The notes under the pieces are model-generated. The model worked only from the letters and a program-made list of their open reading frames with translations. It did not search any database and was not told the origin of the DNA. 64,000 bases of DNA from Blepharisma stoltei ATCC 30299. Taxonomy: Eukaryota > Protista > Ciliophora. Below are positions 12,473 through 39,813 of the stretch, one piece after another. Position numbers and translations under genes: made by a program. The first letter of the stretch is position 1; each line of letters begins with the position of its first letter. The stretch is from NCBI GenBank assembly GCA_965603825.1, contig CBFDEM010000026.1:1-64000 (forward strand), read 5' to 3'.

Positions 12473-13827
12473 ATGGGAAGGTCGACCCGACTGAAGGCAT
12501 GCTTTATATTTTTTTGTCTTTCCTTTGGTATTGGTGCTTATTCTCCTTTTGCAAAATGGGTTTTTACCCCAAACAATCTAGTAGATGGGAAAATCAAAGA
12601 TTTATCAACTAGTAGCAATATGCCTTTCACATGAAGTGGTAAACTAATTCCTACATCAGATGTAACTTGTAAAGGTCTTCATATCACTACTGATAAAATT
12701 TTACTTACTCAGGAAATGCAAGAGCTATTTACTCGTCCACAGTAGAGTATGGGGTAAGTATTTGAATGAACTTGCAAGGAAATGGAATCGCAGTTGATAT
12801 AGGATTTTCTATTTATACTACTTCTTTTTATCGAACCGAATTTAAGGATCACACAACCTTGATCTTTAGTCCACCTCATGGCCAAAAAAAAGAAGTTCCT
12901 ATTTCTCAAGGTATGTTTTAGATAGGAAAATGAATATTTTTAGTCTTTTATTTTGTGAAAATTCAATCCATTTGGACTTGGACAGTTATTTCTCCAGAGT
13001 TTTCCACTGTTACTTTAACTGATACCTACAACCCATGGAATACAATTATAATTGGAAAGTATATAGATGCAGACTATTATGAGATTCAATTCTTCAAAAA
13101 AGCTACTATAAACTCGTCTATTGTCACTTTATATGACAACTCTGATGCTACTTATGATGCTACAACTTCGACTTGTTCAGCTTCTTGCAATACTTATTGT
13201 CACTCCGATGTGGGATGCTTGAGCTCAACACCTTGCCCATGTCCGGCACTTTGCACATGCTCTGCAAATGATGGAGTGTGCTCATATTGTAACGATCAAA
13301 ATGGTGACCTTGCAAATAAGTGTCAATGCAAAACTAATTATGCTCTCGAAGGACTTAGTTGTGTCTTAAGTAATTTTTATGCAGATTCTCCTCTCAATTG
13401 TGCATTATGAACAGCAGAAAAGGTATGCACTCAATGCAATCCAAGCTTTTTCCTCTATAATAGCGGCTCTTCTACAAGCTGCTTAGGTAACTTTTATTTA
13501 GCTTGTGACTCATGCACTTCTTGCAATGCTAGTCCTACTTGCTTTAAATGTGCTGATGTAATTTCTCAATCTGGAAACTCCTGCAGAGTTTACTCAGTTG
13601 GGTACAAGTTTAGCTTTGTCTCTCCAAACATTATTGTTGACTTCGCCTATCCGTTGGCAAAGACTCTAAAAATTAGCAACTTAAAAGCAACAACTGATAG
13701 CCAGGATATCGCGACCACTACTTGGCAAATACACTCACAAACTGCAAGCCAGCTACAGATTAGAACTGATCTTATTCTAAGCCAGCTCCCAATCAAGCTT
13801 AAATTCAGCTTTGAGCAGGAGTCTTAG
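12473..13827 (+). pseudogene. Array copy 1, frameshifted near 12700
   Basis: GATAAAATTTTACTTACTCAGGA puts the conserved YSG out of frame with the ATG and leads to a TAG near 12742. The downstream part is intact in another frame. Confidence 0.75.
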
Positions 13828-14256
13828 AAGGATAATTAATTCTTCTTTCTTAAGTTCGACTTCGAATTTAATTTTTATCAATAATAGATGAGCATGCTAA
13901 AATATATTTCCTTTTCATAACGCGCCAAAATTCTAATCTCTTAAAAATTGCTTTTATTAAAATTTAAAGAAAAAATCTAAATCACTATTGCAAGAAAAGC
14001 TATATTTATTATATTAGCGATAGGAATTTTCCTAAAATACTTAATAAATGAAATCAGATTAAAGCCACCCAAAACTCCTATAATCACATTACTTTGGCTA
14101 TCAACTACACTTTGTAAATTCTAACCAATTTCATTGCTTAGCCTATTAAAGCTCAAATCTAAGTCGCTTATAGCTAGTAAAATGGTGCCTGCCTAAGAAA
14201 ACTCCAAAAATCAATCTAGTTATATTTCGAGTTATCAAAAGTTTCATAAAAAGCCC

Positions 14257-14602
14257 TAGAAGAATGAATAGGTGAATTTTCCCCAGAGATTTTCTTTCAG
14301 TTTTTGATCTGGATAAATGTTGTTGTGACAGATTTGAATTATTCTCATTTTGCAAATCCAATGTGTGAGGCTTTTTGGGTTTTTTAAAAACCTGAATGGG
14401 AGCAGGATATTTGCTAGAATTGTGGTTTTCTGGCCTATATAAAGTGCTTTGTGAAAATATTCTTTTTCCAGTCACAGAAGAGGAGCCTACTCGTGCCCCT
14501 GTGAATGAGCGATATGTGGTGGTTACTTCTAAGAACCCTGTGCTTTGGCCTATGAAAGTGCAATTGGCTTTGGTCAACTGAAAAATTAATTACTTGAGTC
14601 AT
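14257..14602 (-). pseudogene. Duplicated 5' fragment of the DUF4378 gene (copy of ~10497-10866) fused to a TM-gene 3' remnant
   Basis: Near-identical to 10497-10866 with an 11-nt deletion shortly after the ATG (frameshift). The upstream intergenic region is also duplicated (14603-16157 ~ 10867-12472). Confidence 0.9.
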
Positions 14603-15879
14603 ATTTAAATAGCAATTTTTGGAGTTGTTTATAAAGAAACAATAGAAGGATTAAAAAATAGAGGGAAAAGAAGTGATATTTTGAAGGGTTATTTATAAAA
14701 AATAGTCTCAACGATTGTTGTAAATGATAATAGTAAAGGTTTTTGATTGTAAAAGATGAAATTAGAAATTCTTGAATTATCAATCAACTGCTCTTTAAAA
14801 ATGTTAGCCCAATGCTATTTGAAAGTAAATTTCAATTGCAGGTCATAAACTTGGAAGCATATTAAAATACGACCATTACAAAAATTCTTAAAAAGTCTGT
14901 TTGATTTAGCCCAATTCGTGAAAAATACTTTTTACGCTTAAAGAGAGGTGCTATGCTATGTTGCTAAAAATGATTTCTATGTTTCAGAAATAAAATATTG
15001 AAAAATCTGAAATTATCATGAGATAAGTAAATTTGATGTCACAAAATTAGCATTCAACTATTTCGATACTCAGAGCTATAATAATAAATCAAATCAGCAT
15101 AATGACTTGGAAAATAATAATAAAAAATAAGATTTAAGTTATTCTCAACTTTTCTTCGAAATAATCAAAGAAGTAAGCTTAAAGGTTTCCTTTCATTGAA
15201 GAAGGAACAAATATTTCATTCGATTTTAGACATTTTTGTATTCGAAATATCTATTATTCAAGATGCTTAAAATAGCAAAAGCTTTTGCAAAATTTAAATG
15301 CCCTATTTTAATAAAGCAACTGAATGAGATTTGTTTAAATAAAAAAGTATAATTGGCTTGCTTACTCCTGTAGCTCAAACCTCAATATTGCTATTTGAAA
15401 AAAAAATTAATTAAAGGCCTTAAGCTGTGAGTGTATTAAAATACAATCTTTATAAAAATTTCCTAAAATTAATCAACCTTGCATATTTTTCAAGTTTAAG
15501 GATAGGTGCGATACTGCAACAAATAATTTTGTAAGTGTATAAAAGATTAAAAATCGAGCATCATTATGTGACTATAGATTGGATATAATTTGCATTTTAG
15601 CCTTATTATGCTTCATTTCATAATTTTTAGATCCATTCACAAATTTATTTCGGAATGACCTTATGGAGATTACTATTCACAAATAGATTTGATTCAGAAA
15701 GTTTTTGCGTTTAATTGAGATGATAGTTAAAATAAGTCAACTCAATATTATTTACTTCAAGTTTTTCGAATTTATTGATCTAAATTTCCATTTAAGCGTT
15801 TTGTGCTGCCTTAACTTAGAGCTAAAACTTATTGATTGTTGATTTAAAATACCATTCTATTATAGCAGTGCTGACTTAT

Positions 15880-16157
15880 TTTTAGTTTAGGCTAAGTCAC
15901 TGCTTTTGATTTTTAGTGCTCTTTAATAGATTCGTAATTTTCATTGTCTTTTTCGAAGAAGTTACCTACACTCGAAACATAAAAAATTGAAGATCTATTT
16001 TCGATAAAATTGGCTTACGCGTACTTTTATTTAAAATTATTAATTTTTAAAAGTCTTTTTCAAATCCCTTTTTAGAGTTCTAAGAACTCGCTTTTATATC
16101 CGTTTTTCAAAATTTATTTCGATAATTCATTTTTATTTATACGGATATAATTATTAA
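15880..16157 (+). promoter_or_regulatory. Conserved upstream block shared by all nine array copies (representative copy)
   Basis: About 280 bp (TTTAGTTTAGGCTAAGTCACT...GAAGATCTATTTTCGATAAA...ATTTATACGGATATAATTATTAA-ATG) is retained almost unchanged before every copy, whatever the spacer type. A promoter function is inferred only. Confidence 0.55.
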
Positions 16158-17513
16158 ATGGGAAGGTCGACCCGACTGAAGGCATGCTTTATATTTTTTT
16201 GTTTTTCCTTTGGTATTGCTGCTTATTCTCCTTTTGCAAAATGGGTTTTTACCCCAAACAATCTAGTAAATGGGAAGATCAATGACTTATCATCTAATAA
16301 CAATCAGCCTTTCGCATTAAATGGTGAACTAATTGCTACATCAGCAGTAACTTGCAAAGGACTTCATACAGCTTCTTCCGATACTTATTACTCAGGAACT
16401 GCTAGTGCTATTCCCTCGTCCGCAGAAGAGCTTGGGGTAAGTATATGAATGAGCTTGCAAGATAATGGAAGGCCAGTTTATGTATCAATTCGTGGTCCAG
16501 ACATGTCACTTTATGGAGTCGAATTTAAATATCACACAACTTTGATGTTTTTTGCACCTTCAGACAGTATAAAAGAAGTTCCTATTTCCGAAGGTATGTT
16601 TTAGATAGGAAAATGAATATTTTTGGTATTTTATTTTGTTAAAATTCAATCCCTTTGGACTTTGACAGTTATTTCTCCAGAGTTTTCCACTGTTACTTTA
16701 ACTGATACTACCGGCCCAGGGAATAAAATTATGATTGGAAACTATATAGATACATACTATTATGAGATTCAATTCTTCAAAAAAGCTACTATGGACTCGT
16801 CTATTGTCACTTTATATGACAACTCTGATGCTACTTATGATGCTACAACTTCGACTTGTCCAGTTTCTTGCAATACTTATTGTCACTCCGATGTGGGATG
16901 CTTGAGCTCAACAGCCTGCCCATGCGCGGGACTTTGCATGTGCTCTGCAAATGATGGTGTGTGCTCATCTTGCAATGATCCAAATGGTGACCTTGCAAAT
17001 AAGTGTCAGTGTAAAACTGGTTATGATCTCCAAGGAAACATATGTGTCTTAAGTAATTTTTATACAGAATCCCCTCCTAATTGTGCATTATGAACAGCAG
17101 AAAAGGTATGCACTCAATGCAATCCAAGCTTTTTTCTCTATAATAGCGGCTCTTCTACAAGCTGCTTAGGTAACTTTTATTTAGCTTGTGACTCATGCAC
17201 TTCTTGCAATGCTAGTCCTACTTGCTTTAAATGTACCGATGTAATTTCTCAAGCTGGAAATTCCTGTAAAGTTGACTCTGTTGGCTACAAGTTTAGCTTT
17301 GTCTCTCCAAACATTATTGTTGACTTCGCCTATCCTTTGGCAAAGACTCTAAAAATCAGCAACTTAAAAGCAACAACTACTGATAACCAGGCTATCTCGA
17401 CCACTACTTGGGAAATCCACTCACAAACTGCAAGCCAGCTACAGATTAGAACTGATCTTATTCTAAGCCAGCTCCCAATCAAGCTTAAATTCAGCTTTGA
17501 GCAGGATCTTTAG
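16158..17513 (+). CDS. Array copy 2, intact, 441 aa: signal peptide, LamG/ConA-like domain, Cys-rich (furin/EGF-like) region, beta-rich C-terminal domain
   Basis: Open frame with TGA=W after removing introns 16594-16608 and 17170-17184. Hydrophobic N-terminus ACFIFFCFSFGIAA; no TM helix or GPI tail visible. Confidence 0.9.
16594..16608 (+). other. 15-nt spliceosomal intron GTATGTTTTAGATAG (intron 1 of array genes; representative)
   Basis: GT..AG, A at position 10, contains an in-frame TAG. Splicing gives ISEGKWIFLVF. Present in all nine copies with minor variants. Confidence 0.92.
17170..17184 (+). other. 15-nt intron GTAACTTTTATTTAG (intron 2 of array genes; representative)
   Basis: GT..AG with A at position 10. 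Splicing gives SCLACDSCTSC. The intron is in frame and has no stop, so splicing is inferred rather than forced. Confidence 0.8.
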
Positions 17514-17559
17514 AAGGATAATTAAGATCGACTTCATGGAAATTAATTTTTGCAATAAT

Positions 17560-18640
17560 AGATGAAGTGCGATGCAATATACTTCTTTTTCATAATGAGT
17601 TAAAAATTATGAGCTCTCTAAATATTACTATTATTGATATTTAAAGAAAAAATATAATTCACTAATATAGGAAAAATATATTTATAATACTTATTATATT
17701 GGGGAATGGAATTATTTGCATCAAAGAATTAATTTTCCTAAAATACTTTTTTCCTCTAATTAAAAAAGCAAATAAATCTCAAAGTGCATAATAAACGAAT
17801 TCTCAATAAAAACATCCAAAACTCCTATAATCACATTCATTTGGCCATCAACCACACTTTGTGAATACTGATCAATCTGGATGATTAGCCCATTAAATCT
17901 CAACTTTCAGTCGTTTATAAATAGATTAAATCGCTCCAGCTGAAACTCCGAAAATAAATCTAATATAATCAGCTTGAAATAAAGCCATTTCTCCAGTTGA
18001 ATTAAGCCCATTGCCAATTCATCTCAAGTCGAATCGTCAGCTTTTTCGAAAAATATTTTGAAAAAATGTGGGAATATTTGGAATTTCTTATGACAGATTG
18101 CGAACGTTTAATTCTTTGCATGGTGTCTTTTATTGAAACTAAACTATTTCTGAAAGCATATGAGTAAGGCATTTGATTTTGAAGAGAAATCCCAACAGTC
18201 TCACCTCCACTTTCTGTTGCTCATATTCCTAAGCTGACATATAAAATTGCATGCTTATTAGTTGATTATTTCAGGCCGATTAAGAGTTTGGGCACAATTT
18301 TCATATAGATAAGCTATTTACAATAGAAAACAGCAATATCGATAAGTTATAGGGAAAATCTTCATAGGTATTTTGGAGTTAAATGGAATTTTTGAAGGAT
18401 TTCTAATTACTTGTCTATGATATTGAGAAAACTTAATACCAAAGCCTTATGACTTTTTGTTTCAAGTGTCAAAGGGCTTCTACAAGAATTCAAGAGCTCT
18501 AAAATGCATATTTGGCGACCCTAAAATGGCCGTAACAAGAGTGGGCTTGGAGGTATATATTTTTAGCATATCCAGTTTATTTCGAAAATTTGTAATAATT
18601 TTCGAAATCCTTTAAGACCAAAGAGAGAGCATGCTACTAG
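17560..18640 (-). pseudogene. Degenerate remnant of a membrane-protein gene in spacer type B (repeated at ~29740-30840)
   Basis: An open stretch reads LGIWATESGGETVGISLQNQMPYSYAFRNSLVSIKDTMQRIKR on the minus strand. Its left part is homologous to 37400-37730. Confidence 0.45.
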
Positions 18641-19658
18641 CGATAAGTTTAGCTTAAGCAAAATAAGTATAACTGGCTTGCTTAATCCTGTAGCTCAACT
18701 TCAATAGTGCTATTTGAAGAAAAAAACTAATCAAAGACCATAAGCTGGGAGCATATTAAAATGTACATATTTTTAAGTTTAAGGATAGGCGTGATACTGT
18801 TACAAATAATTTTCTAAGACTTATCTTAATAATTTAAACTTTACGAATAAATTGAAGTCTTTATTAGGATTATAATTATAAGCTTAAGTTCGTAAATTAA
18901 CTCATTTCGTAGCTTGCTATCAGAATTTCTTCCATTTAAGCTATTTGTGCAGCCTTAACTTAAGAGCTTAACTTAAAATAACTATTAAAATTATAGCATT
19001 ATAGAAGAATCCGCTTCATGAATTTCCCTAACCCAACTTTTATTATAGGGCTAAGTTTTGTACATAATTTATGTCTGATAGTCTGATGAAGTCAAGACTA
19101 CTTAGCATCTTTCATTTTCGTGCTTTACCTCTTCCTGTGCTTGATACTGTAAGACCATTAGACCAAACAGGTGCTAGTAGATAAGGTGATAGCAAGGCCG
19201 CTTGAATTTTCAGAGCTTCTGGATTATTAAATAACTAATTGAAGCTAAAATCGAGTCAAAGGTGTATGAGCAATCTAGGGTAGCGAGAAAAATGCCCCTC
19301 ATTGAACTGGTATTTAGAGGCTAGATTATCGGATAAGAAAATTAAGTTATTACATATTTATAGCAATGACTAAATTATTTTTTAGTTTAGGCTAAGTCAC
19401 TGACTTTTAATTTTTCAGTGATCTTTAATAGATTTATAATTTTCATTTTCTTTTTCGAAGAAGTTACCTGCACTCGAAACATAAAAAATTGAAGATCTAT
19501 TTTCGATAAAACGTGCTTACACGTGCTTTTATTTAAAATTATTAATTTTTAAAAGTCTTTTTCAAATCCCTTTTTAGAGTTCTAAGAGCTGGCTTTTATA
19601 TCCTTTTTTAAAATTTATTTCGATAATTCATTTTTATTTATACGGATATAATTACTAA

Positions 19659-20993
19659 ATGGGAAGGTCGACCCGACTGAAGGCATGCTTTATAATTTTT
19701 TGTTTTTCCTTTGGTATTGCTGCTTATTCTCCTTTTGCAAAATGGGTTTTTACCCCAAACAATCTAGTAGATGGGAAGATCAAAGACTTATCATCATATA
19801 GCAATATGCCTTTCAGAGCATCAGGAGCTGGTGAAATAATTGCTACATCAGATGTAACTTGTAAAGGTTTTCATACCTATTCTCAAAATGGTTACTACTC
19901 AGGAATTGCAAGTGCCATTTCCTGGTCCACAGCAGAGCTTGGGGTAAGTATATGAATGAGCTTGCAAGGCAATGGAATCCCAGTTTCACTATATCCTTAT
20001 TTAACCACATTTAAGGATCAAATTTTGATCTTTAAGACACCTTATAATAAAATAAAAGAAGTTCCTATTTCTCAAGGTATGTTTTAGATAGGAAAGTGAA
20101 TATTTTTGGTATTTTATTTTATTAAAATTCAAACCCTTTGGACTTGGACAGTTATTTCTCCAGAGTTTTCCGCTTTTAGTTTAACTGATATCACCAGCCC
20201 AGGGAATACAATTATAATTGGCTGAAATATAGATGCAGACTATTATGAGATTCAAGTCTTCAAAAAAGCTACTATAAACTCGTCTATTGTCACTTTATAT
20301 GACATCTCTGATGCTACTTATGATGCTACAACTTCGACTTGTCCAGCTTCTTGCGCCAGTTATTGTCAACCCGAAATGGGATGTTTAAGCTCAACAACTT
20401 GCCCATGCCCGGCACTTTGCACATGCTCTACAAATGATGGAGTGTGCTCATCTTGTAACGATCCAAATGGTGACCTTGCAAATAAGTGTCAATGCAAAAC
20501 TAATTATGCTCTCGAAGGACTTACTTGTGTCTTAAGTAATTTTTATGCAGATTCTCCTCTCAATTGTGCATTATGAACAGCAGAAAAGGTATGCACTCAA
20601 TGCAATCCAAACTTTTTCCTCTATAATAGCGGCTCTTCTACAAGCTGCTTAGGTAACTTTTATTTAGCTTGTGACTCATGCACTTCTTGCAATGCTAGTC
20701 CTACTTGCTTTAAATGTGCTGATGTAATTTCTCAATCTGGAAACTCCTGCAGAGTTTACTCAGTTGGGTACAAGTTTAGCTTTGTCTCTCCAAACATTAT
20801 TGTTGACTTCGCCTATCCGTTGGCAAAGACTCTAAAAATTAGCAACTTAAAAGCAACAACTGATAGCCAGGATATCGCGACCACTACTTGGCAAATACAC
20901 TCACAAACTGCAAGCCAGCTACAGATTAGAACTGATCTTGTTCTAAGCCAGCTCCCAATCAAGCTTAAATTCAGCTTTGAGCAGGAGTCTTAG
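19659..20993 (+). CDS. Array copy 3, intact
   Basis: ATG to TAG in frame (1335 nt including two 15-nt introns); only TGA codons inside the exons. Confidence 0.88.
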
Positions 20994-21468
20994 AAGGATA
21001 ATTAATTCTTCTTTCTTAAGTTCGACTTCGAATTTAATTTTTATCAATAATAGATGAGCATGCTAAAATATATTTCCTTTTCTAACTCGCGCCAAAATTC
21101 TAATCTCTTAAAAATTGCTTTTATTAAAATTTAAAGAAAAAATCTAAATCACTATTGCAGGAAAAGCTATATTTATTATATTAGCGATAGGAATTATTTT
21201 CATCAAAGATTTAATTTTCCTAAAATACTTCCCTAACAGAATCAAAAGTATATAATAAATGAAATCAGATTAAAGCCACCCAAAACTCCTATAATCACAT
21301 TACTTTGGCTATCAACTACACTTTGTAAATTCTGATCAATTTCATTGCTTAGCCTATTAAAGCTCAAATCTAAGTCGCTTATAGCTAGTATAAATGGTGC
21401 CTGCCTAAGAAAACTCCAAAAATCAATCTAGTTATATTTCGAGTTATCAAAAGTTTCATAAAAAGCCC

Positions 21469-21814
21469 TAGAAGGATGAATAGGTGAATTTTCCCCAGAG
21501 ATTTTCTTTCAGTTTTTGATCTGGATAAATGTTGTTGTGACAGATTCGAATTATTCTCATTTTGCAAATCCAATGTGTGAGGCTTTTTGGGTTTTTTAAA
21601 AACCTGAACGGGAACAGGATATTTGCTAGAATTGTGGTTTTCTGGCCTATATAAAGTGCTTTGTGAAAATATTCTTTTTCCAGTCACAGAAGAGTAGCCT
21701 ACTCGTGCCCCTATGAATGAGCGATATGTGGTGGTTACTTCTAAGAACCCTGTGCTTTGGCCTATGAGAGTGCAATTGGCTTTGGTCAACTGAAAAGTTA
21801 ATTACTTGAGTCAT
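21469..21814 (-). pseudogene. Second duplicated 5' fragment of the DUF4378 gene
   Basis: Same junction and same deletions as 14257-14602. Confidence 0.9.
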
Positions 21815-23266
21815 ATTTAAATAGCAATTATTTGAGTTGTTTATAAAGAAACAATAGAAGGATTAAAAAATAGAGGAAAAAGACGGTGATATTTTGAAGG
21901 GTTATTTATAAAAAATAGTCTCAACGATTGTTGTAAAGGATAATAGTAAAAGTTTCTTATTGTAAAAGATGAAATTCGAAATTCTTGAATTATCAATCAA
22001 CTGCTCTTTAACAATGTTAGCCCAATGCTATTTGAAAGTAAATTTCAATTGCAGGTCATAAACTTGGAAGCATATTAAAATACGACCATTACAAAAATTC
22101 TTAAAAAGTCTGTTTGATTTAGCCCAATTCGTGAAAAATCCTTTTTACGCTTAAAGAGAGGTGCTATGCTATGCTGCTAAAAATGATTTCTATGTTTCAG
22201 AAATAAAAATTGAAAAATCTGAAATTATCATGAGATAGTTTACGGAATAATATTTCCTTAGCATTCAGCTATTCCGATACTCAGAGCTATAATAATAAAT
22301 CAAATCAGCATAATGACTTGGAAAATAATAATAATAAAAATTAAGATTTAAGTTATTCTCAACTTTTCTTCGAAATAATCAAAGAAAAAAGCTTAAAAAG
22401 TTTCCTTTCATTGAAGAAGGAACCAATATTCCATTCTATTTTAGACATTTTTGTATTCAAAATATCTATTATTCAAGATGCTTACAGCATTTAAAATAGC
22501 AAAAGCTTTGCAAAATTTAAATGCCCTATTTTAATGAAGCAACTTAATGAGATTTGTTTAAATGATAAAATATAGTTGGCTTGCTTACTCCTGCAGCTCA
22601 AACTTCAATATTGCTATTTGAAAAAAAAAATTTAATTAAAGGCCATATGCTGTGAGTGTATTAAAATACAATCTTTATAAAAATTTTCTAAAATTAATCT
22701 AGACTTGTGTATTTTTTCAAGTTTAAGGATAGGTGCGATATTGCAACAAATAATTTTGTAAGCGTATAAAAGATTAAAAATCGAGCATCATTATGTGACT
22801 ATAGATTGGATGTAATTTGCATTTTAGCCTTATATGGTTCAATTCATAATTTTTAAATCCATTCACATTTTCGAAAGAATTGATCTAAGCTTCTATTTAA
22901 GCTATTTGTGCTGCCTTAACTTAAGAGCTAAAACTTATTGATTGTTGACTTAAAAAGCCACCCTATTATAGCAGTGGCTGACTTATTTTTTAGTTTAGGC
23001 TAAGTCACTGGCTTTTAATTTTTCAGTGCTCTTTAATTGATTCGTAATTTTTATTGTCGTTTTCCAAGAAGTTATCTACACCGAAACATAAAAAATTGAA
23101 GATCTATTTTCGATAAAACGGGCTTATGCGTGCTTTTATTTAAAATTATTAATTTTTAAAAGTCTTTTTCAAATCCCTTTTTAGAGTTCTAAGAACTCGC
23201 TTTTATACCCGTTTTTCAAAATTTATTTCGATAATTCATTTTTATTTATACGGATATAATTATTAA

Positions 23267-24617
23267 ATGGGAAGGTGACCCGACTGAAGGCATGCTTTAT
23301 AATTTTTTGTTTTTCCTTTGGTATTGCTGCTTATTCTCCTCTTGCAAAATGGGTTTTTACCCCAAACAATCTAGTAAATGGGAAGATCAAAGACTTATCA
23401 TCTAATAGCAATGAGCCTTTCGCAGGAGATGGTAAAATAATTGCTACATCAGATGTAACTTGTAAAGGTCTTCATACCGCTTCTTCCAATAGCGATTACT
23501 GAGGAACTGCAAGTGCTATTCCCTCGTCCACAGTAGAGTATGGGGTAAGTATATGAATGAGCTTGCAAGGCAATGGAGATCCAGTTTATATAAAACGCTA
23601 TTATAACGCCATGAAACTTCATCAAGCCACATTTAAGGACCAAATCTTGATCTTTAGTCTATCTTATGGCCAAAAGGAAGAAGTTCCTATTTCCGAAGGT
23701 ATGTTTTAGATAGGAAAATGAATATTTTTGGTATATTATTTTGTTAAAATTCAATCCATTTGGGTTTGGACAGTTATTTCTCCAGAGTTTTCCACTGTTA
23801 CTTTATTTGATGACTACGAACCAGGGAATACAATTATAATTGGAAATTATATAGATGCAGACTATTATGAGATTCAATTCTTCAAAAAAGCTACTATAAA
23901 CTCGTCTATTGTCACTTTATATGACATCTCTGATGCTACTTATGATGCTACAACTTCGACTTGTCCAGCCTCTTGCGCCAGTTATTGTCACCCCGAAATG
24001 GGATGCTGAGCTCAACAGCTTGCCCGTGTCCGACAATTTGCACATGCTCTGCAAATGATGGAGTGTGCTCATCTTGCAACGATCCAAATGGTGACCTTGC
24101 AAATAAGTGTCAATGCAAAACTAATTATGCTCTCGAAGGACTTACTTGTGTCTTAAGTAATTTTTATGCAGATTCTCCTCTCAATTGTGCATTATGAACA
24201 GCAGAAAAGGTATGCACTCAATGCGATCCAAACTTTTTTCTCTATAATAGCGGCTCTTCTACAAGCTGCTTAGGTAACTTTTATTTAGCTTGTGACTCAT
24301 GCACTTCTTGCAATGCTAGTCCTACTTGCTTTAAATGTGCTGATGTAATTTCTCAATCTGGAAACTCTTGCAGAGTTTACTCAGTTGGGTACAAGTTTAG
24401 CTTTGTCTCTCCAAACATTATTGTTGACTTCGCCTATCCTTTGGCAAAGACTCTAAAAATTAGCAACTTAAAAGCAACAACTAAGGATAGCCAGGCTATC
24501 GCGACAACTACTTGGCAAATACACTCACAAACTGCAAGCCAGCTACAGATTAGAACTGATCTTATTCTAAGCCAGCTCCCAATCAAGCTTAAATTCAGCT
24601 TTGAGCAGGAGTCTTAG
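23267..24617 (+). pseudogene. Array copy 4, two 1-nt deletions
   Basis: AGGTGACC instead of AGGTCGACC at ~23275, and TGCTGAGC instead of TGCTTGAGC at ~24006. Confidence 0.75.
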
Positions 24618-26316: not shown

Positions 26317-27655
26317 ATGGGAAGGTCGACCCGACTGAAGGCATGCTTTATAATTTTTTGTTTTTCCTTTGGTATTGCTGCTTATTCTCCTTTTGCAAAA
26401 TGGGTTTTTACCCCAAACAATCTAGTAGATGGGAAGATCAAAGACTTATCATCTAATAGCAATATGCCTTTCAGAGCATTAGAAGATCATGAAATAATTG
26501 CTACATCAGATGTAACTTGTAAAGGTTTTCATACCTATTCTCATCTATGGAACTGCAAGTGCTATTTCCTCGTCCACAGTAGAGCTTGGGGTAAGTATAT
26601 GAATGAGCCTGCAAGGCAATGGATACCCAGTTTCAATATGACCTTCTTATGGAGAAAATCTACCTTATTCAACCACATTTAAGGATCACACAATCTTGAC
26701 CTTTAAGACACCTTCAGATGAAATAAAAGAAGTTCCTATTTCCGAAGGTATGTTTTAGATAGGAAAATGAATATTTTTGGTATTTTATTTTGTTAAAATT
26801 CAAACCCTTTGGACTTGGACAGTTATTTCTCCAGAGTTCTCCGCTTTTAGTTTAACTGATACCACCGGCCCAGGGGATGAAATTATAATTGGAAATTATA
26901 TAGATGCAGACTATTATGAGATTCAATTCTTCAAAAAAGCTACTATAAATTCTTCTATTGTCACTTTATATGACATCTCTGATGCTACTTATGATGCTAC
27001 AACTTCGACTTGTCCAGCTTCTTGCAATACTTATTGTCACTCCGATGTGGGATGCTTGAGCTCAACAGCTTGCCCATGCCCGGCACTTTGCACATGCTCT
27101 GCAAATGATGGAATGTGCTCATCTTGCAACAATCCAAATGGTGACCTTGCAAATAAGTGTCAATGCAAAACTAATTATGCTCTCGAAGGACTTACTTGTG
27201 TCTTAAGTAATTTTTATGCAGATTCTCCTCTCAATTGTGCATTATGAACACCAGAAAAGGTATGCACTCAATGCAATCCAAACTTTTTTCTCTATAATAG
27301 CGGCTGCATAGGTAACTTTTATTTAGCTTGTGACTCATGTACTTCTTGCAATGCTAGTCCTATTTGCTTTACATGTGCTGATGTAATTTCTCAATCTGGA
27401 AACTCTTGCAGAGTAGACTCAGTTGGGTACAAGTTTAGCTTTGTCTCTCCAAACATTATTGTTGACTTCACCTATCCTTTGGCAAAGACTCTAAAAATCA
27501 GCAATTTAAAAGCAACAACTACGGATAACCAGGCTATCTCGACCACTACTTGGCAAATCCACTCACAAACGGCAAGCCAGCTACAGATTAGAACTGATCT
27601 TATTCTAAGCCAGCTCCCAATCAAACTTGACTTCAGCTTTGAGCAGGACCCTTAG
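26317..27655 (+). pseudogene. Array copy 5, frameshifting deletion near 26543
   Basis: TCTCATCTATGGAACTGCA shifts the frame inside hypervariable segment 2; the downstream ORF at 26777 is out of frame with the ATG. There is also an in-frame 12-nt deletion at ~27303. Confidence 0.8.
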
Positions 27656-28337
27656 AAGGATAATTAATTGTTTTTATTATTCGTTTGCATAAGTTTGACT
27701 TCATGGAAATAATTTTTACCAATAATGGATGAAGCACGCTGCAATATATTTCCTTTTCATAGCACGTGTGAAAATTTTAAGCTCTCTAAATATTGGAATT
27801 TAAACAAAAACTCTAAATCACTATTTTAGGTAAAGCTATATGGAGATTACTCTTAACAAATAAATTTTATTTAGAAAGTTTTACGTTTAATTGAGATGAT
27901 AGTTAAATTAAGTCAACTCAATATTAATTATTTCTAGTTTTTCTGAATAATTGATCTAAGCTTCCATTTAAGTTATTTGTGCTGCCTTAACTTAAGAGCT
28001 AAAACTTATAATTGTTGATTTATAAAATCTATTAAATATTAAAGCAGTGACTGACTTATTTTTTTAGTTTAGGCTAAGTCACTGGCTTTTAATTTTTTAG
28101 TGCTCTCTAATAGACTCGTAATTTTTATTGTCGTTTCGAAAAGTTGCCTATACTCGAAACATAAAAAATTGAAGATCTATTTTCGATAAAACGGGCTTAC
28201 GCGTGCTTTTATTTAAAATTATTAATTTTTAAAAGTCTTTTTGAATCCCTTTTTAGAGTTCTAAGAACTCGCTTTTATATCCTTTTTTAAAATTTATTTC
28301 GATAATTCATTTTTATTTATACGGATATAATTATTAA

Positions 28338-29690
28338 ATGGGAAGGTCGACCCGACTGAAGGCATGCTTTATAATTTTTTGTCTTTCCTTTGGTATTGCT
28401 GCTTATTCTCCTTTTGCAAAATGGGTTTTTACCCCAAACAATCTAGTAGATGGGAAGATCAAAAACTTATCATCTAATAGCAATGAGCCTTTCGCAGGAA
28501 ATGGTGAACTAATTTCTACATCAGATGTAACTTGTAAAGGTCTTCATATCGCTTCTTCCGAAGCTGCTTACTCAGGAACTGCAAGTGCTATTTCCTCGTC
28601 CACAGTAGAGTTTGGGATAAGTATATGAACGAGCTTGCAAGGCAATGGAGATCCAGGTTATATAGCACGTTATTTAATAAGCATGTCACTTTATCAAACC
28701 GCATTAAAGGATCAAATCTTGGTCTTTAAGACACCTTCATATGAATTAAAAAAATTTCCTATTTCTCAAGGTATGTTTTAGAAAGGAAAATGAATATTTT
28801 TTATCTTTTATTTTGTTAAAATTCAATTCCTTTGGACTTGGACAGTTATTTCTCCAGAGTTTTCCACTGTTACTTTAACTGATGCCTACGACCCAGGGAA
28901 TATAATTATAATTGGCTGAAATATAGATGCAGACTATTATGAGATTCAAGTCTTCAAAAAAGCTACTATAAACTCGTCTATTGTCACTTTATATGACATC
29001 TCTGATGCTACTTATGATGCTACAACTTCGACTTGTCCAGCCTCTTGCGCCAGTTATTGTCACCCCGAAATGGGATGCTTGAGCTCAACAGCTTGCCCAT
29101 GTCCGACAATTTGCACATGCTCTGCAAATGATGGAGTGTGCTCATCTTGCAACGATCCAAATGGTGACCTTGCAAATAAGTGTCAATGTAAGACTAATTA
29201 TGCTCTCGAAGGACTTATTTGTGTCTTAAGTAATTTTTATATAGAATCCCCTCCAAATTGTGCATTATGAACAGCAGAAAAGGTATGCACTCAATGCGAT
29301 CCAAACTTTTTCCTCTATAATAGCGGCTCTTCTACAAGCTGCTTAGGTAACTTTTATTTAGCTTGTGACTCATGCACTTCTTGCAATGCTAGTCCTACTT
29401 GCTTTAAATGTGCTGATGTAATTTCTCAATCTGGAAACTCTTGCAGAGTTTACTCAGTTGGGTACAAGTTTAGCTTTGTCTCTCCAAACATTATTGTTGA
29501 CTTCGCCTATCCGTTAGCAAAGACTCTAAAAATCAGCAACTTAAAAGCAACAACTACCGATAACCAGGCTATCTCGACCACTACTTGGCAAATTCACTCA
29601 CAAACGGCAAGCCAGCTACAGATTAGAACTGATCTTATTCTAAGCCAGCTCCCAATCAAGCTTAAATTCAGCTTTGAGCAGGACCCTTAG
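28338..29690 (+). CDS. Array copy 6, intact
   Basis: In frame from ATG to TAG. Intron 1 variant is GTATGTTTTAGAAAG. Confidence 0.87.
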
Positions 29691-31869
29691 AAGGATAATT
29701 AATTCTTCTTTCTTAAGATCGACTTCATGGAATTTAATTTTTTACCAATAATGGATGAAGGGCTGCAACATATTTCTTTTTCATATTGAACTAAAATTCT
29801 GAGCTCTCTAAATATTACTATTATTGATATTTAAAGAAAAAATATAATTCACTAATGCAGGAAAGCTATATTTATAAATACTTATTATATTCGGGATATG
29901 GAATTATTTTAATCAAAGAATTAATTTTCCTCAAATAATTTTTTCCTCTAATTAAAAAAGAGAATAAATCCCAAAGTGCATAATAAACGAAATCTCAATA
30001 AAAACATCCAAAACTCGTATAATCACATTCATTTGGCCATCAACCACACTTTATGAATACTGATCAACCTCGATGATTAGCCCATTAAAGCTCAACTTTC
30101 AGTCGTTTATAAATAGATTAAATCGCTCCAGCTGAAACTCCGAAAATGAATCTAATATAATCAGCTTGAAACAAAGCCATTTCTCCAGCTGAATTAAGTC
30201 CATTGCCAATTCATCTCAAGTCGAATCGTCAGCTTTTTCGAAAAATATTTTGAAAAAATGTGGGAATATTTGGAATTTCTTATGACAGATTGCGAACGTT
30301 TAATTCTATGCATGGTGTCTTTTATTGAAACTAAACTATTTCTGAAAGCATATGAGTAAGGCATTTGATTTTGAAGAGAAATCCCAACAGTCTCACCTCC
30401 ACTTTCTGTTGCTCATATTCCTAAGCTGACATATAAAATTGCATGCTTATTAGTTGATTATTTCAGACCGATATAGAGTTTGGGCACAATTTTCATATAG
30501 ATAAGCTATTTACAATAGAAAACAGCAATATGACGATAAGTTATAGCGAAAATCTTCATAGGTATTTTCAATATATTTTGGAGTTAAATGGAATTTTTGA
30601 AGGATTTCTAATTACTTGTCTATGATATTGAGAATACTTAAATATCCAAGCCTTATGACTTTTTGTTTCAAGTGTCAAAGGGCTTCTACAAGAATTCAAG
30701 AGCTCTAAAATGCATATTTGGGGACCCTAAAATGGCTGCAACAAGAGTGGGCTTGGAGGTCATAGATTTTTAGCATATCCAGTTTATTTCGAAAATTTGT
30801 AATAATTTTCGAAATCCTTCAAGACCAAAGAGAGAGCATGCTACTAGCGATAAGTTTAGCTTAAGCAAAATAAGTATAACTGGCTTGCTTAATCCTGTAG
30901 CTCAAACTTCAATAGTGCTATTTGAAGAAAAAAACTAATCAAAGACCATAAGCTGGGAGCATATTAAAATGTACATATTTTTAAGTTTAAGGATAGGCGT
31001 GATACTGTTACAAATAATTTTCTAAGACTTATCTTAATAATTTAAACTTTACGAAAAAATTGAAGTCTTTATTAGGATTATAATTATAAGCTTAAGTTCG
31101 TAAATTAACTCATTTTGTAGCTTGCTATCAGAATTTCTTCCATTTAAGCTATTTGTGCAGCCTTAACTTAAGAGCTTAACTTAAAATAATTATTAAAATT
31201 ATAGCATTATAGAAGAATCCGCTTCATGAATTTCCCTAACCTAACTGTTATTATAGGGCTAAGTTTTTGTACATAATTTATGTCTGGTAGTCTGATAAAG
31301 GCAAGACTACTTAGCATCTTTCATTTTCGTACTTTACCTCTTCCTGTGCTTGATACTGCAAGACCATTAGACCAAACAGGTGTTAGAAGATAAGGTGATA
31401 ACCATGCCGCTTGAATTTTTAGAACTTCTGGGTTATTAAATAACCTAATTGAAGCTAAAATCGAGTCAAAGGTGTATGAGCAATCTAGGGTAGCGAAAAA
31501 ATTGCCCCTCATTGAACTGGTATTTAGAGGCTAGATTATCGGATAAGAAAATTAAGTTATTATATATTTATAGCAATGACTAAATTATTTTTTAGTTTAG
31601 GCTAAGTCACTGGCTTTTAATTTTTCAGTGCTCTTTAATTGATTCGTAATTTTTATTGTCGTTTTCCAAGAAGCTACCTACACTAGAAACATAAAAAATT
31701 GAAGATCTATTTTCGATAAAACGTGCTTATGCGTGCTTTTATTTGAAATTATTAATTTTTAAAAGTCTTTTTCAAATCCCTTTTTAGATTTCTAAGAACT
31801 CGCTTTTATATCCGTTTTTTAAAATTTATTTCGATAATTCATTTTTATTTATACGGATATAATTATTAA

Positions 31870-33231
31870 ATGGGAAGGTCGACCCGACTGAAGGCATGCT
31901 TTATAATTTTTTGTTTTTCCTTTGGTATTGATGCTTATTCTCCTTTTGCAAAATGGGTTTTTACCCCAAACAATCTAGTAAATGGGAAGATCAATGACTC
32001 ATCATCATATAGCAATATGCCTTTCGGAGCATTAGATGGTTATAAAATAATTGCTACATCAGATGTAACTTGTAAAGGTTTTCATACCTATTCTGTTCCT
32101 GCTTACTACTTTGCAACTGCAAGTGCTATTTCCTCGTCCACAGTAGAGCTTGGGGTAAGTATATGAATGAGCTTGCAAGGCAATGGATACCCAGTTTCAG
32201 TATGACCTTCTTATGGAGAAGATCCACCTTATACAACCACATTTAAGGATCACACAATCTTGGTCTTTAAGACACCTTCAGATGAAATAAAAGAAGTTCC
32301 TATTTCCGAAGGTATGCTTTAGATAGGAAAATGAATATTTTTGGTATTTTATTTTGTTAAAATTCAAACCCTTTGGACTTTGACAGTTATTTCTCCAGAG
32401 TTTTCCGCTTTTAGTTTAACTGATACCTACGGCCCAGGGGATGAAATTATAATTGGAAATTATATAGATGCATACTATTATGAGATTCAATATTTCAAAA
32501 AAGCTACTATAAACTCGTCTATTGTCACTTTATATGACAACCTTGATGCTACTTATGATGCTACAACTTCGACTTGTCCAGCTTCTTGCAATACTTATTG
32601 TCACTCCGATGTGGGATGCTTAAGCTCAACAGCTTGCCCATGCCCGGCACTTTGCACATGCTCTGCAAATGATGGAGTGTGCTCATCTTGTAACGATCCA
32701 AATGGTGACCTTGCAAATAAGTGTCAATGCAAAACTAATTATGCTCTCGAAGGACTTACTTGTGTCTTAAGTAATTTTTATGCAGATTCTCCTCTCAATT
32801 GTGCATTATGAACAGCAGAAAAGGTATGCACTCAATGCAATCCATACTTTTTCCTCTATAATAGCGGCACTTCTGCAAGCTGCTTAGGTAACTTTTATTT
32901 AGCTTGTGACTCATGCACTTCTTGCAATGCTAGTCCTACTTGCTTTAAATGTACTGATGTAATTTCTCAAGCTGGAAACTCCTGTAGAGTTGACTCAGTT
33001 GGGTACAAACTTAGCTTTGCTTCTCCAAACATTGTTTTTGACTTCGCCTATCCGTTAGCAAAGACTCTAAAAATTAGCAACTTAAAAGCAGCAACAACTG
33101 ATAGCCAGGCTATCTCGACCACTACTTGGCAAATCCACTCACAAACTGCAAGCCAGCTACAGATTAGAACTGATCTTGTCCTAAGCCAGCTCCCAATCAA
33201 ACTTGACTTCAGCTTTGAGCAGGACCCTTAG
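31870..33231 (+). CDS. Array copy 7, intact
   Basis: In frame from ATG to TAG with two 15-nt introns. Confidence 0.88.
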
Positions 33232-33906
33232 AAGGATAATTAATTCTTTTTTCTTAAGTTTGACTTCATGGAAATAATTTTTACCAATAATGGATGAAGC
33301 ACGCTGCAATATATTTCCTTTTGATAGCACGTGTGAAAATTTTAAGCTCTCTAAATATTGCAATTTAAAAAAAAATCTAAATCACTATTTTAGGTAAAGC
33401 TATATGGAGATTACTCTTAACAAATAAATTTTATTTAGAAAGTTTTACGTTTAATTCAGATGATAGTTAAAATAAGTGAACCCAATATTAATTATTTCTA
33501 GTTTTTCTGAATAATTGATCTAAGCTTCCATTTAAGCTATTTGTGCTGCCTTAACTTAAGAGCTAAAACTTATTGATTGTTGATTTATAAAGTCTATTAA
33601 ATATTAAAGCAGTGACTGAATTACTTTTTTAGTTTAGATTAAGTCACTGGCTTTTAATTTTTTAATGCTCTCTAATAGATTCGTAATTTTCATTGTCGTT
33701 TTCCAAGAAGTTACCTACACTCGAAACATAAAAAATTGAAGATCTATTTTCGATAAAACGTGCTTATGCGTGCTTTTATTTAAAATTATTAAATTTTAAA
33801 AGTCTTTTTTAAATCCCTTTTTAGAGTTCTAAGAACTCGCTTTTATATCCGTTTTTCACAATTTATTTCGATAATTCATTTTTATTTATACGGATATAAT
33901 TATTAA

Positions 33907-35264
33907 ATGGGAAGGTCGACCCGACTGAAGGCATGCTTTATAATTTTTTGTTTTTCCTTTGGTATTGTTGCTTATTCTCCTCTTGCAAAATGGGTTTTTA
34001 CCCCAAACAATCTAGTAGATGGGAAGATCAAAGACTCATCATCTAATAGCAATGAGCCTTTCGCAGAAGATACTTATGGAATAATTGCTACATCAGATGT
34101 AACTTGTAAAGGTTTTCATACCTATTCTCGTACTGCTTACTACTATGGAACTGCAAGTGCTATTTCCTCGTCCACAGTAGAGCTTGGGGTAAGTATATGA
34201 ATGAGCTTGCAAGGCAATGGATACCCAGTTTCAATAGGACCTTCTAATGAATATAGTCTACCTTATTCAACCACATTTAAGGATCACACAATCTTGGTCT
34301 TTAAGACACCTTCAGATGAAATAAAAGAAGTTCCTATTTCCGAAGGTATGTTTTAGATAGGAAAATGAATATTTTTGGTATTTTATTTTGTTAAAATTCA
34401 AACCCTTTGGACTTTGACAGTTATTTCTCCAGAGTTTTCCGCTTTTAGTTTAACTGATACCTACGGCCCAGGGGATAAAATTATAATTGGAATGTATATA
34501 GATGCAGACTATTATGAGATTCAAGTCTTCAAAAAAGCTACTATAAACTCGTCTATTGTCACTTTATATGACAACCTTGATGCTACTTATGATGCTACAA
34601 CTTCGACTTGTCCAGCTTCTTGCAATACTTATTGTCACTCCGATGTGGGATGCTTAAGCTCAACAGCTTGCCCATGCCCGGCACTTTGCACATGCTCTGC
34701 AAATGATGGAGTGTGCTCATCTTGTAACGATCCAAATGGTGACCTTGCAAATAAGTGTCAATGCAAAACTAATTATGCTCTCGAAGGACTTACTTGTGTC
34801 TTAAGTAATTTTTATGCAGATTCTCCTCTCAATTGTGCATTATGAACAGCAGAAAAGGTATGCACTCAATGCAATCCATACTTTTTCCTCTATAATAGCG
34901 GCACTTCTACAAGCTGCTTAGGTAACTTTTATTTAGCTTGTGACTCATGCACTTCTTGCAATGCTAGTCCTACTTGCTTTAAATGTACTGATGTAATTTC
35001 TCAAGTTGGAAACTCCTGTAGAGTTGACTCAGTTGGGTACAAACTTAGCTTTGCTTCTCCAAACATTGTTGTCGACTTCGCCTATCCGTTAGCAAAGACT
35101 CTAAAAATCAGCAACTAAAAGCAGCAACTACTGATAACCAGGCTATCGCGACCACTACTTGGCAAATCCACTCACAAACTGCAAGTCAGTTACAGGTTAG
35201 AACTGATCTAATTCTAAGCCAACTCCCAATCAAACTTGACTTCAGCTTTGAGCAGGACCCTTAG
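33907..35264 (+). pseudogene. Array copy 8, 1-nt deletion giving premature TAA at 35116-35118 (loses about 48 C-terminal aa)
   Basis: AGCAACTAAAAGCA versus AGCAACTTAAAAGCA in the other copies. It could still encode a truncated protein, or be a consensus error. Confidence 0.65.
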
Positions 35265-35939
35265 AAGGATAATTAATTCTTTTTTCTTAAGTTTGACTTC
35301 ATGGAAATAATTTTTACCAATAATGGATGAAGCACGCTGCAATATATTTCCTTTTCATAGCTCGTGTGAAAATTTTAAGCTCTCTAAATATTGCAATTTA
35401 AAAAAAAATCTAAAACACTATTTTAGGAAAAGCTATATGGAGATTACTCTTAACAAATAAATTTTATTCAGAAAGTTTTACGTTTAATTCAGATGATAGT
35501 TAAAATAAGCCAACCCAATATTAATTATTTCTAGTTTTTCTGAATAATTGATCTAAGCTTCCATTTAAGTTATTTGTGCTGCCTTAACTTAAGAGCTAAA
35601 ACTTATTGATTGTTGATTTATAAAATCTATTAAATATTAAAGCAGTGGCTGAGTTAGTTTTTTAGTTTAGGCTAAGTCACTGGCTTTTAATTTTTCAATG
35701 CTCTCTAATAGATTCGTAATTTTCATTGTCGTTTTCCAAGAAGTTACCTACACTCGAAACATCAAAAATTGAAGATCTATTTTCGATAAAATGGGCTTAT
35801 GCGTGCTTTTATTTAAAATTATTAATTTTTAAAAGTCTTTTTCAAATCCCTTTTTATAGTTCTAAGAACTCGCTTTTATGCCCGTTTTTTAAAATTTATT
35901 TCGATAATTCATTTTTATTTATACGGATATAATTATTAA

Positions 35940-37292
35940 ATGGGAAGGTCGACCCGACTGAAGGCATGCTTTATAATTTTTTGTCTTTCCTTTGTTATTG
36001 CTACTTATTCTCCTTTTGCAAAATGGGTTTTTACCCCAAACAATCTAGTAGATGGGAAGATCAAAGACTTATCATCTAATAGCAATGAGCCTTTCGCAGG
36101 AGATGGTAACATAATTGCTACATCAGATGTAACTTGTAAAGGTTTTCATATCTATTCTCGTACTGCTTTCTACTGAGGAACTGCAAGTGCTATTCCCTCG
36201 TCCACAGTAGAGTTTGGGGTAAGTATATGAATGAGCTTACAAGGCAATGGATACCCAGTTTATATAGCACGTTTATATTCAGACATGACATCTTATTACA
36301 CCGAATTTAAGGATCAAATCTTGATTTTTAGAACAACTGAAGACGAAAAAAAAGAAGTTCCTATTTCCGAAGGTATGTTTTAGATAGGAAAATGAATATT
36401 TTTGGTATATTATTTTGTTAAAATTCAATCCCTTTGGACTTTGTCAGTTATTTCTCCAGAGTTTTCCACTGTTACTTTAACTGATGCCTACGAACCAGGG
36501 AAATTAATTATGATTGGAAATATTATAGATGCATATTATTATGAGATTCAATTCTTCAAAAAAGCTACTATAAACTCGTCTATTGTCACTTTATATGACA
36601 ACCTTGATGCTACTTATGATGCTACAACTTCGACTTGTTCAGCTTCTTGTAATACTTATTGTCACCCCGATGTGGGATGCTTAAGCTCAACACCTTGCCC
36701 ATGTCCGACACTTTGCACGTGCTCTGCAAATGATGGAGTGTGCTCATCTTGCAACGATCCAAATGGTGACCTTGCAAATAAGTGTCAATGCAAAACTAAT
36801 TATGCTCTCGAAGGACTTACTTGTGTCTTAAGTAATTTTTATGCAGATTCTCCTCTCAATTGTGCATTATGAACAGCAGAAAAGGTATGCACTCAATGCA
36901 ATCCAAGCTTTTTCCTCTATAATAGCGGCTCTATTACAAGCTGCTTAGGTAACTTTTATTTAGCTTGTGACTCATGCACTTCTTGCAATGCTAGTCCTAC
37001 TTGCTTTAAATGTACTGATGTAATTTCTCAAGTTGGAAACTCCTGTATTGTTGACTCAGTTGGGTACAAACTTAGCTTTGCTTCTCCAAACATTGTTTTT
37101 GACTTCGCCTATCCGTTAGCAAAGACTCTAAAAATTAGCAACTTAAAAGCAACAACTGCTGATAACCAGGCTATCGCGACCACTACTTGGCAAATCCACT
37201 CACAAACTGCAAGCCAGTTACAGATTAGAACTGATCTAATTCTAAGCCAACTCCCAATCAAACTTGACTTCAGCTTTGAGCAGGACCCTTAG
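35940..37292 (+). CDS. Array copy 9, intact
   Basis: In frame from ATG to TAG with two 15-nt introns. Confidence 0.88.
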
Positions 37293-39266: not shown

Positions 39267-39813
39267 ATAGTGTTATTATAACTTATATTTGAAAGATTGT
39301 TTTAATTTTTCTTAGCGGAATCCGAGTAAAATAAGTAGGGATGAAATGGGATTTTATATGAGATATTATAATGTAAATATGATGCAATTTTCAGATTTGA
39401 CCAATATGGATTCAATATCAAAAATTTGAGAAAAATCGTTGAAATGTTTAAGTAGAAAGAAGATAAAAATTCGATAAAAAATAAAATTGAGTTTGACTGT
39501 TTAAATAATAATTATATATATAAAATTATTTATGCTTAAATCGTCAAAAATTTAGTCTTAACACTTTTTCATCAAAAAATATAGAATATTAATAAAAAAC
39601 ATTTAATTATTTCAAATCTCAATTTGAAGGTTTATTTAAGAACAAACTTAAACACTGAAACAAATCATTTTAATTTTTGATAAAAAATTATAGATCTGAA
39701 TAAGGATAATTTAGAGCTCATCTTAAACAATTACAATTTTTATCGGCAAAATTATTATTTAACTATTTCTTTCTAAAAACCCTGTTTTATAGAATAATAA
39801 ATTATTATAAATA

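Follow-up and report, generated by a model that had tools for sequence, protein, structure and literature searches.

Tandemly arrayed secreted proteins with a predicted lectin-type fold and a hypervariable, positively selected head in the ciliate Blepharisma stoltei

Introduction

Ciliates are known to carry variable multigene families. The Ser (i-antigen) genes of Tetrahymena and the surface antigen (SAg) genes of Paramecium encode Cys-rich proteins with signal peptides, lie in tandem arrays, have duplicated in the germline with shared internal eliminated sequences (IESs), and show an excess of nonsynonymous change in a variable region (PMC4136848, PMC4235209). The nearest ciliate proposal of a recognition repertoire is that of the Tetrahymena leucine-rich repeat (LRR) genes with 90-bp exons, a rapidly evolving family shaped by ectopic recombination for which bacterial recognition was proposed (PMC6564038). 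These traits recur in the locus described here, an array of nine tandem paralogues, all on the + strand, at 12473-37292 of contig CBFDEM010000026.1 of Blepharisma stoltei ATCC 30299. The window, meaning the whole stretch analysed, covers positions 1-64,000 of that contig and is macronuclear DNA, read with UGA as Trp.

The molecular basis on which phagotrophic protists discriminate prey, pathogens and kin is largely open. The genome of ATCC 30299 has 41 Mbp in 64 contigs, with CCCTAACA telomeres, UGA as a Trp codon and introns of 15-16 nt, and the strain is virtually homozygous (PMC9942806). Literature searches found no description of the array family, and the supplement of the genome paper covers only clusters of membrane proteins (PMC9942806). 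Existing public annotation describes the array proteins as uncharacterised, EGF-like or TNFR-Cys. The array adds a solid and so far undescribed example, from a free-living protist, of a secreted lectin-fold family under strong diversifying selection.

Results

Diversifying selection is confined to the head

The proteins are composed of a signal peptide, a head of ~195 amino acids, a stalk with about 22 Cys and a beta-rich tail of ~85 amino acids. Their parts and hypervariable (HV) segments are located in copy 9 as follows:

35940-36005, + strand: predicted signal peptide (hydropathy peak at residue 9; cleavage site inferred)
36006-36602, + strand: predicted ConA-like/LamG beta-sandwich head, with intron 1 inside at 36373-36387
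36087-36113, + strand: HV1
36150-36179, + strand: HV2
36246-36320, + strand: HV3, a hairpin and its flanking strands
36324-36359, + strand: HV3b, a fifth variable segment just before intron 1
36480-36524, + strand: HV4
36603-37031, + strand: Cys-rich stalk with about 22 Cys and introns 2 and 3 inside; ratio of nonsynonymous to synonymous rates (dN/dS) 0.55-0.60
37032-37292, + strand: C-terminal beta-rich tail of ~85 amino acids; dN/dS 0.25, common to roughly 65 genes

Joined gene models, with the introns taken out and frame breaks masked as N, were used for alignment, local tblastn and dN/dS. Mean pairwise protein identity was 52% in the HV segments, 88% in the head framework, 90% in the stalk and 91% in both tail and signal peptide. 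By the Nei-Gojobori method on nine copies, dN/dS was 2.35 in the HV segments, 0.85 in the head framework, 0.60 in the stalk and 0.25 in the tail; for the whole head, with no picking of segments, it was 1.57 (bootstrap P=0.003), so that a dN/dS above 1, as predicted for the segments, was indeed found. The proportion of nonsynonymous differences (pN) exceeded the synonymous one (pS) in the head for 35 of 36 pairs of copies and in the tail for a single pair (1/36). In the HV segments dN was 0.41 and pooled dS 0.17, with dS of 0.07-0.19 in framework, stalk and tail. Since HV dS is not above that of the tail (0.19), an escape of the segments from gene conversion does not explain their dN.

Codon site models, run with our own implementation of GY94 (code 4, multi-nucleotide changes being outside the model), gave the same picture: M2a was preferred to M1a in the head with 2dL=179 and assigned w=9.6 to 21% of sites, whichever of two frequency schemes was used; in stalk and tail it showed no significant positive selection. 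This signal was kept when four segments were placed on their own trees, when the five intact copies were used alone and when columns near gaps were removed. In 20 simulations without positive selection, with segment-specific trees and rates, 2dL reached at most 26.6 and w under M0 at most 0.82. The HV columns also concentrated the differences between two independent paralogues on contig 35 (38/71 columns, against 23/122 elsewhere; P=1e-6), although in this older pair pN is not above pS. Strong diversifying selection, confined to the head, is therefore observed, and the proposal that a constant scaffold carries a variable, positively selected surface is borne out by dN/dS, site models and simulations.

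The earlier note, made from the sequence alone, had quoted HV1-HV4 peptides, each of which is present when UGA is read as Trp. All four of its hypervariable segments are real, but its list was short by HV3b. It had also described the segments as rich in Tyr, Trp, Ser and Gly; enrichment holds for Tyr (9.8 vs 5.1%) and Gly (9.7 vs 4.0%) but fails for Trp (1.3 vs 3.8%) and Ser (7.3 vs 13.5%).

Selected sites map to one predicted sheet

With sheets assigned from predicted strands, nine of the 34 strand positions on the six strands of one sheet were selected, against one of 59 on the other (P=4e-4), in agreement with a clustering on one face. Several selected positions alternate along strands (Y120/E122, I129/R131), and the remaining ones fall in loops joining strands of the selected sheet. 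Tyr is twice as frequent at selected sites. Galectins, pentraxins and CBM40 bind their ligands on the concave sheet, to which the variable sheet of the array heads would correspond.

Fold of the head and lack of an anchor

The AlphaFold2 (AF2) model of the head had a predicted local distance difference test score (pLDDT) of 73 and a predicted template modelling score (pTM) of 0.76, with residues 11-43 poorly predicted. Its fold matches were galectins, sialidase lectin domains, LamG/LNS and pentraxin-like domains, with Z of 10-12, and the full-protein model reached Z of 14.9 over the head region. Structural alignments with members of the ConA-like superfamily extended over 130-170 residues at 5-15% identity and covered a two-sheet antiparallel jelly-roll beta-sandwich. 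All matches of a protein language model were Laminin_G_3 clusters (0.97). These predictions (Z 11-15 and the language-model matches) uphold the lectin-type fold that had been proposed: the head is, as modelled, a ConA-like/LamG beta-sandwich, a fold that does not by itself imply carbohydrate binding. As identity to all fold matches is 5-15%, the superfamily can be placed, not the family or function. The top Foldseek matches, botulinum binding-domain and NTNH chains, were rejected as kin, since only the common jelly-roll is shared, at 10-15% identity.

Sequence searches were in line with this distance. No Pfam match above cut-off was found for array pieces or full proteins, including PF13385 (27.6 bits), and distant paralogues matched Laminin_G_3 (PF13385) weakly, at 10-16 bits against the gathering cut-off of 27.6. 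There was no Pfam match to SPRY, which was not among the top fold matches either. A PDB sequence search gave chance matches only, none at E<1, and thus no sequence homology to galectins, pentraxins or legume lectins. The tail model contained about eight strands at pLDDT 55-69.

Apart from two Cys in the signal peptide and a single one in the head, all Cys lie within residues ~228-357. No C-terminal hydrophobic stretch, transmembrane (TM) segment or glycosylphosphatidylinositol (GPI) signal was found; the end is polar and the last 25 residues have a mean hydropathy of about -0.15. A spliced, polyadenylated transcript of a relative that also reads UGA as Trp ends directly after the tail. The idea that the genes run on into a membrane receptor was rejected, as spliced homologues end there.

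Transcription of several copies

Contigs from four bulk sequencing runs, taken to be RNA, cover the genes and not the spacers, and end at intron 1. All four runs yielded contigs that match HV1-HV3 of copy 7 at 100% identity, and three yielded HV3 or HV4 of copy 9; the support for copy 2 was weak, a 13-nt loose end that fits only its spliced form. Loose ends also match the spliced head-only copy on contig 35. HV1-HV2 of the broken copy 8 were not seen in the contigs of the four runs, which cannot prove absence. Thus, intact copies are expressed (7, 9 and weakly 2), and several copies are transcribed in the same culture; copies 7 and 9 occur in the same bulk samples, at the level of cultures and not of single cells.

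Organisation of the array

The telomere and the nine copies are placed as follows:

1-554, + strand: telomere array, 69 copies of an 8-bp repeat, a permutation of CCCTAACA, matching the repeat of PMC9942806
12473-13827, + strand: copy 1, +2 nt frameshift in HV2
16158-17513, + strand: copy 2, intact; 15-nt introns at 16594-16608, 17053-17067 and 17170-17184
19659-20993, + strand: copy 3, intact, 7-codon deletion in HV3; CAG9320629.1
23267-24617, + strand: copy 4, two 1-nt deletions (near 23276 and 24009)
26317-27655, + strand: copy 5, 11-nt deletion in HV2; germline 1319-bp insertion after 26863
28338-29690, + strand: copy 6, intact; CAG9320634.1
31870-33231, + strand: copy 7, intact; CAG9320636.1
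33907-35264, + strand: copy 8, 1-nt deletion in tail
35940-37292, + strand: copy 9, intact; CAG9320638.1; 408-bp germline IES after 36947
13853/13854, no strand: junction of a 326-bp germline IES after copy 1

As assembled, five copies are intact (2, 3, 6, 7 and 9) and four are frameshifted (1, 4, 5 and 8); the intact ones encode 429-438 amino acids once three introns are removed. Most copies have a stop codon in frame within intron 1. Introns 2 and 3 preserve the reading frame in the array, but their counterparts in relatives elsewhere shift it, and both are absent from a spliced homologue transcript. Spacers measure 675-2330 nt. Upstream DNA is almost the same between copies, and with 88-91% identity outside the HV segments the description of nine near-identical paralogues stood. 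The label 'subtelomeric' fared less well: the contig does begin with a telomere array, but the label is weak because telomere addition occurs throughout the B. stoltei genome (PMC9942806).

A spacer block of ~800 bp is repeated at 10497-11273, 14257-15026 and 21469-22259, and therefore some duplication units exceeded one gene.

Germline duplication and segment exchange

IES content was compared with the germline-containing record GCA_914767885.1, a somatic assembly with IESs inserted (PMC9942856), which for that reason cannot show somatic sequence changes. Homologous IESs, 96% and 72% alike, occur at the same place after copies 1, 4 (24643) and 6 (29716), and a 76-bp relative follows copy 8 (35289). 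The other array IESs are unit-specific, and spacer length also varies by unit. Shared-position and unit-specific IESs together indicate that the units were duplicated in the germline and are not alleles; with a virtually homozygous strain (PMC9942806) and unit-specific spacers and IES content, the array is not an assembly of allelic reads.

The copies are recombinant mosaics (PHI-type test, P<0.001) whose nearest neighbours shift along the gene, HV1 pairing copies 4 and 9, HV3 copies 5, 7 and 8, and the tail copies 1 and 3. This mosaicism indicates that HV modules have been recombined by segment exchange over evolutionary time. IES excision as a builder of HV diversity was rejected: only two of the 13 IESs in the array span lie inside genes, the 408-bp one of copy 9 in the constant region and the other at an HV edge in a broken copy. 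No somatic joints were seen in the RNA contigs, and the sole IES touching an HV edge is in that broken copy. The earlier note's term 'antibody-like' therefore holds as an analogy only, the repertoire being small (five intact copies here, about eight close ones genome-wide) and with no sign of somatic diversification.

The 1319-bp germline insertion in broken copy 5 lies at the start of HV4 and is flanked by a 17-bp direct repeat; it is possibly a retroelement remnant with its target-site duplication. It has a GC content of 41% and differs from the usual TA-bound IESs. Several IESs in the spacers resemble miniature inverted-repeat transposable elements, with terminal inverted repeats.

The wider family and the neighbouring genes

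Relatives were searched for in a genome of 41,464,486 bases in 64 contigs. Contig 35 carries two intact close paralogues and one disrupted by an inversion; others are on contig 26 (a 3' half) and contig 6. The tail search returned 73 matches, roughly 65 genes after fragments were merged, including about 20 further genes with divergent LamG-type heads, some in a cluster on contig 64. Of the 16 clusters whose contigs have a known length, seven are found at most 50 kb from a contig end, but gene clusters of this kind may cause assembly breaks, and telomere addition is genome-wide (PMC9942806).

Beyond this genome, only two transcripts were found, one for an MMETSP protein (69% identical to a contig 16 member) and one for a metatranscriptome protein. 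A phmmer search with the head against 1.84 billion representatives gave three matches, all from B. stoltei, and none from Stentor or another ciliate at E<0.001; a scan of metagenome contigs had no confirmed match. The tail searched alone, limited by its length, found one B. stoltei fragment and an atlas score of 0.76, which is a lead only. At the present sensitivity of sequence searches, the family seems to occur only in Blepharisma or its near relatives.

Several details of relatives were recorded. The contig 35 paralogue at ~556.8-558.2 kb has an internal inversion of ~225 bp and yields a transcribed, spliced, head-only protein of 229 amino acids; intron 1 of one contig 35 paralogue has 17 nt, against 15 nt in the array. 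Clusters with divergent LamG-type heads and the same tail lie at 297-386 kb of contig 64 and 864-898 kb of contig 21. Arrays with the same tail on contigs 64, 48 and 35 have long Cys-rich heads and the same two intron positions, and some of these members have an acidic pro-region with a basic KERK-like site at its end.

Adjoining the array is a gene of the Mur-ligase family (folylpolyglutamate synthase-like; 39811-41058, + strand), followed further along the window by a Notch-repeat-containing gene at about 42.8-49.4 kb. At 49700-64000, on the - strand, an open frame of at least 4767 amino acids under UGA as Trp runs past the window end and encodes a giant LamG-Cys receptor, with nine LamG and Cys-rich units that are 22-43% alike, a polycystin/REJ-like region, a GPS-like motif and several TM segments. 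The array head had no detectable homology to the nine LamG units of this neighbour (hhalign 0.4%).

Discussion

Our preferred reading, to which we assign a probability of roughly 0.55, is that the array is a germline-encoded variable recognition family of secreted adaptors, with a head for foreign surfaces, a rigid stalk and a tail that docks on a shared host partner. It builds on established features, namely the fold of the head, the selection acting on it, the shuffling of segments, duplication in the germline, the transcription of several copies and the absence of an anchor; the ligand, the location and the role of the tail are what we infer beyond these. The family would evolve by birth-and-death: its copies arose by germline duplication, and gene conversion or unequal crossing-over between them reshuffles HV1-HV4 combinations. 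The paralogues would differ in target, each binding its own glycan or protein on the surface of prey, microbes or parasites, themselves ever-changing. The stalk would present the head, and the constant tail, common to about 65 genes with other heads, would dock on a common partner, for which the cell coat, an oral or food-vacuole membrane receptor or another copy are candidates. The proteins would thus act as opsonin- or agglutinin-like adaptors.

Several points weigh against this reading. The ConA-like fold does not imply sugar binding, since LamG and SPRY domains bind proteins. The sheets were assigned from model strands (DSSP) and the usual LamG topology, and HV1 and HV2 lie in a weakly predicted part of the model (pLDDT 35-56). 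The RNA evidence consists of contigs of four bulk runs whose RNA status is a guess and which possibly represent two strains.

The rival that survives best, unlikely as it is, sees the proteins as decoys, receptors or parts of a coat or of mucus, with a variable face that is targeted by predators, parasites, viruses or toxins, so that variation serves escape. Positive selection is equally expected for a target, the array lies 12-37 kb from a telomere, and ciliate Cys-rich variable surface proteins have high nonsynonymous rates in their exposed part (PMC4235209, PMC4136848). However, variation is limited to one predicted sheet with its loops, and the back sheet, the stalk and the tail, although exposed too, are conserved; the proteins are also without a GPI signal, and copies 7 and 9 occur in the same samples. 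The putative location of the selected sites on a concave sheet is our main reason to prefer recognition over escape.

Self/non-self or mate recognition among Blepharisma cells, such as kin discrimination in cannibalism or species barriers in conjugation, is quite unlikely. Blepharisma forms cannibal giants, Cys-rich furin-like stalks occur in ciliate mating-type proteins, and the RNA runs probably stem from the sole public study, part of which is a conjugation series. Allorecognition, however, usually relies on allelic polymorphism at few loci and not on co-expressed paralogues, and the array proteins are without a TM segment. Moreover, Blepharisma mating types are set by gamones 1 and 2 (PMC9942806).

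A digestive or inhibitory role, in which secreted enzymes that degrade glycans, or inhibitors of enzymes, have diversified their substrate clefts, is improbable. The fold is common to GH16, PL7 and GH131 enzymes and to a legume-lectin amylase inhibitor, but no invariant acidic or aromatic catalytic set was found on the variable sheet, and the invariant Glu197 would lie on the conserved sheet, in a usual structural position of LamG. Very unlikely, too, is an extension of the preferred reading in which the ~65 genes form a modular innate recognition system with swappable heads and an Fc-like constant tail and, in addition, the array is diversified somatically into clone-specific head repertoires; such diversification would proceed by variable excision at the edges of HV segments or by the copies recombining within the polyploid macronucleus.

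A neutral pattern or artefact, in which gene conversion homogenised the framework while the loops drifted, or misassembly, is hardly credible and largely refuted already: four of nine copies are broken, conversion is evident and framework dN/dS is near 0.9, but HV dN (0.41) is above HV dS (0.17) and above framework, stalk and tail dS (0.07-0.19), simulations without selection came nowhere near the signal, the strain is homozygous (PMC9942806) with unit-specific IESs, and copy-specific RNA contigs match at 100% identity.

The array provides a small, culturable, genome-sequenced test case of eight or so near-identical secreted proteins with about 30 positively selected positions. Because their differences are mainly at these positions, specificity can be mapped by head expression and segment swaps in vitro.

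Set beside the known systems, the locus is undescribed, as the earlier note had supposed, but the concept is less unprecedented than that note held, because the Ser, SAg and LRR families already represent variable multigene surface families in ciliates. In contrast to Ser and SAg, the array proteins have no GPI signal, their Cys are found in the conserved stalk and not in periodic repeats over the whole length, their variation sits in a separate globular head of lectin-type fold, and no mutual exclusion was seen at culture level. The absent GPI signal and the lack of whole-length Cys repeats rule out an identity as Ser/SAg surface antigens.

The lectin-like FREPs and VCBPs of invertebrates are, like the array proteins, secreted and tandem-expanded, with a variable recognition domain joined to a constant part. 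The same features are described for invertebrate C1qDC proteins (PMC6835236). The domains of all three are unrelated to the array head, and the array belongs to a unicellular host with no somatic diversification shown. The Tetrahymena LRR genes have a different fold, and their diversity comes from exon number and shuffling under purifying selection (PMC6564038), whereas the array owes its diversity to point substitution (w near 10) and to the exchange of segments. The giant LamG3 receptors of Blepharisma, OG0000019 among them, share the genome, Laminin_G_3 domains and clustered genes with the array (PMC9942806), but are membrane proteins with multiple LamG domains; the array proteins are secreted, and their heads have no detectable homology to the neighbouring receptor.

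The closest parallel in design is given by the SPRYSEC effectors of cyst nematodes and the B30.2/SPRY domain of TRIM5alpha, in which a beta-sandwich scaffold likewise carries a hypervariable, positively selected surface; SPRYSECs, like the array proteins, are also secreted and multigenic (PMC5071358). The array head is LamG3/galectin/CBM40-like with no SPRY match, it is joined to a Cys stalk and a constant tail, and its host is free-living and not a parasite. By this analogy, the array works like SPRYSEC and TRIM5-SPRY, as a stable sandwich with a hypervariable selected surface, without being a SPRY protein. A constant beta-sandwich with a hypervariable face would have arisen independently in a free-living ciliate, on a LamG-type and not a SPRY or Ig scaffold.

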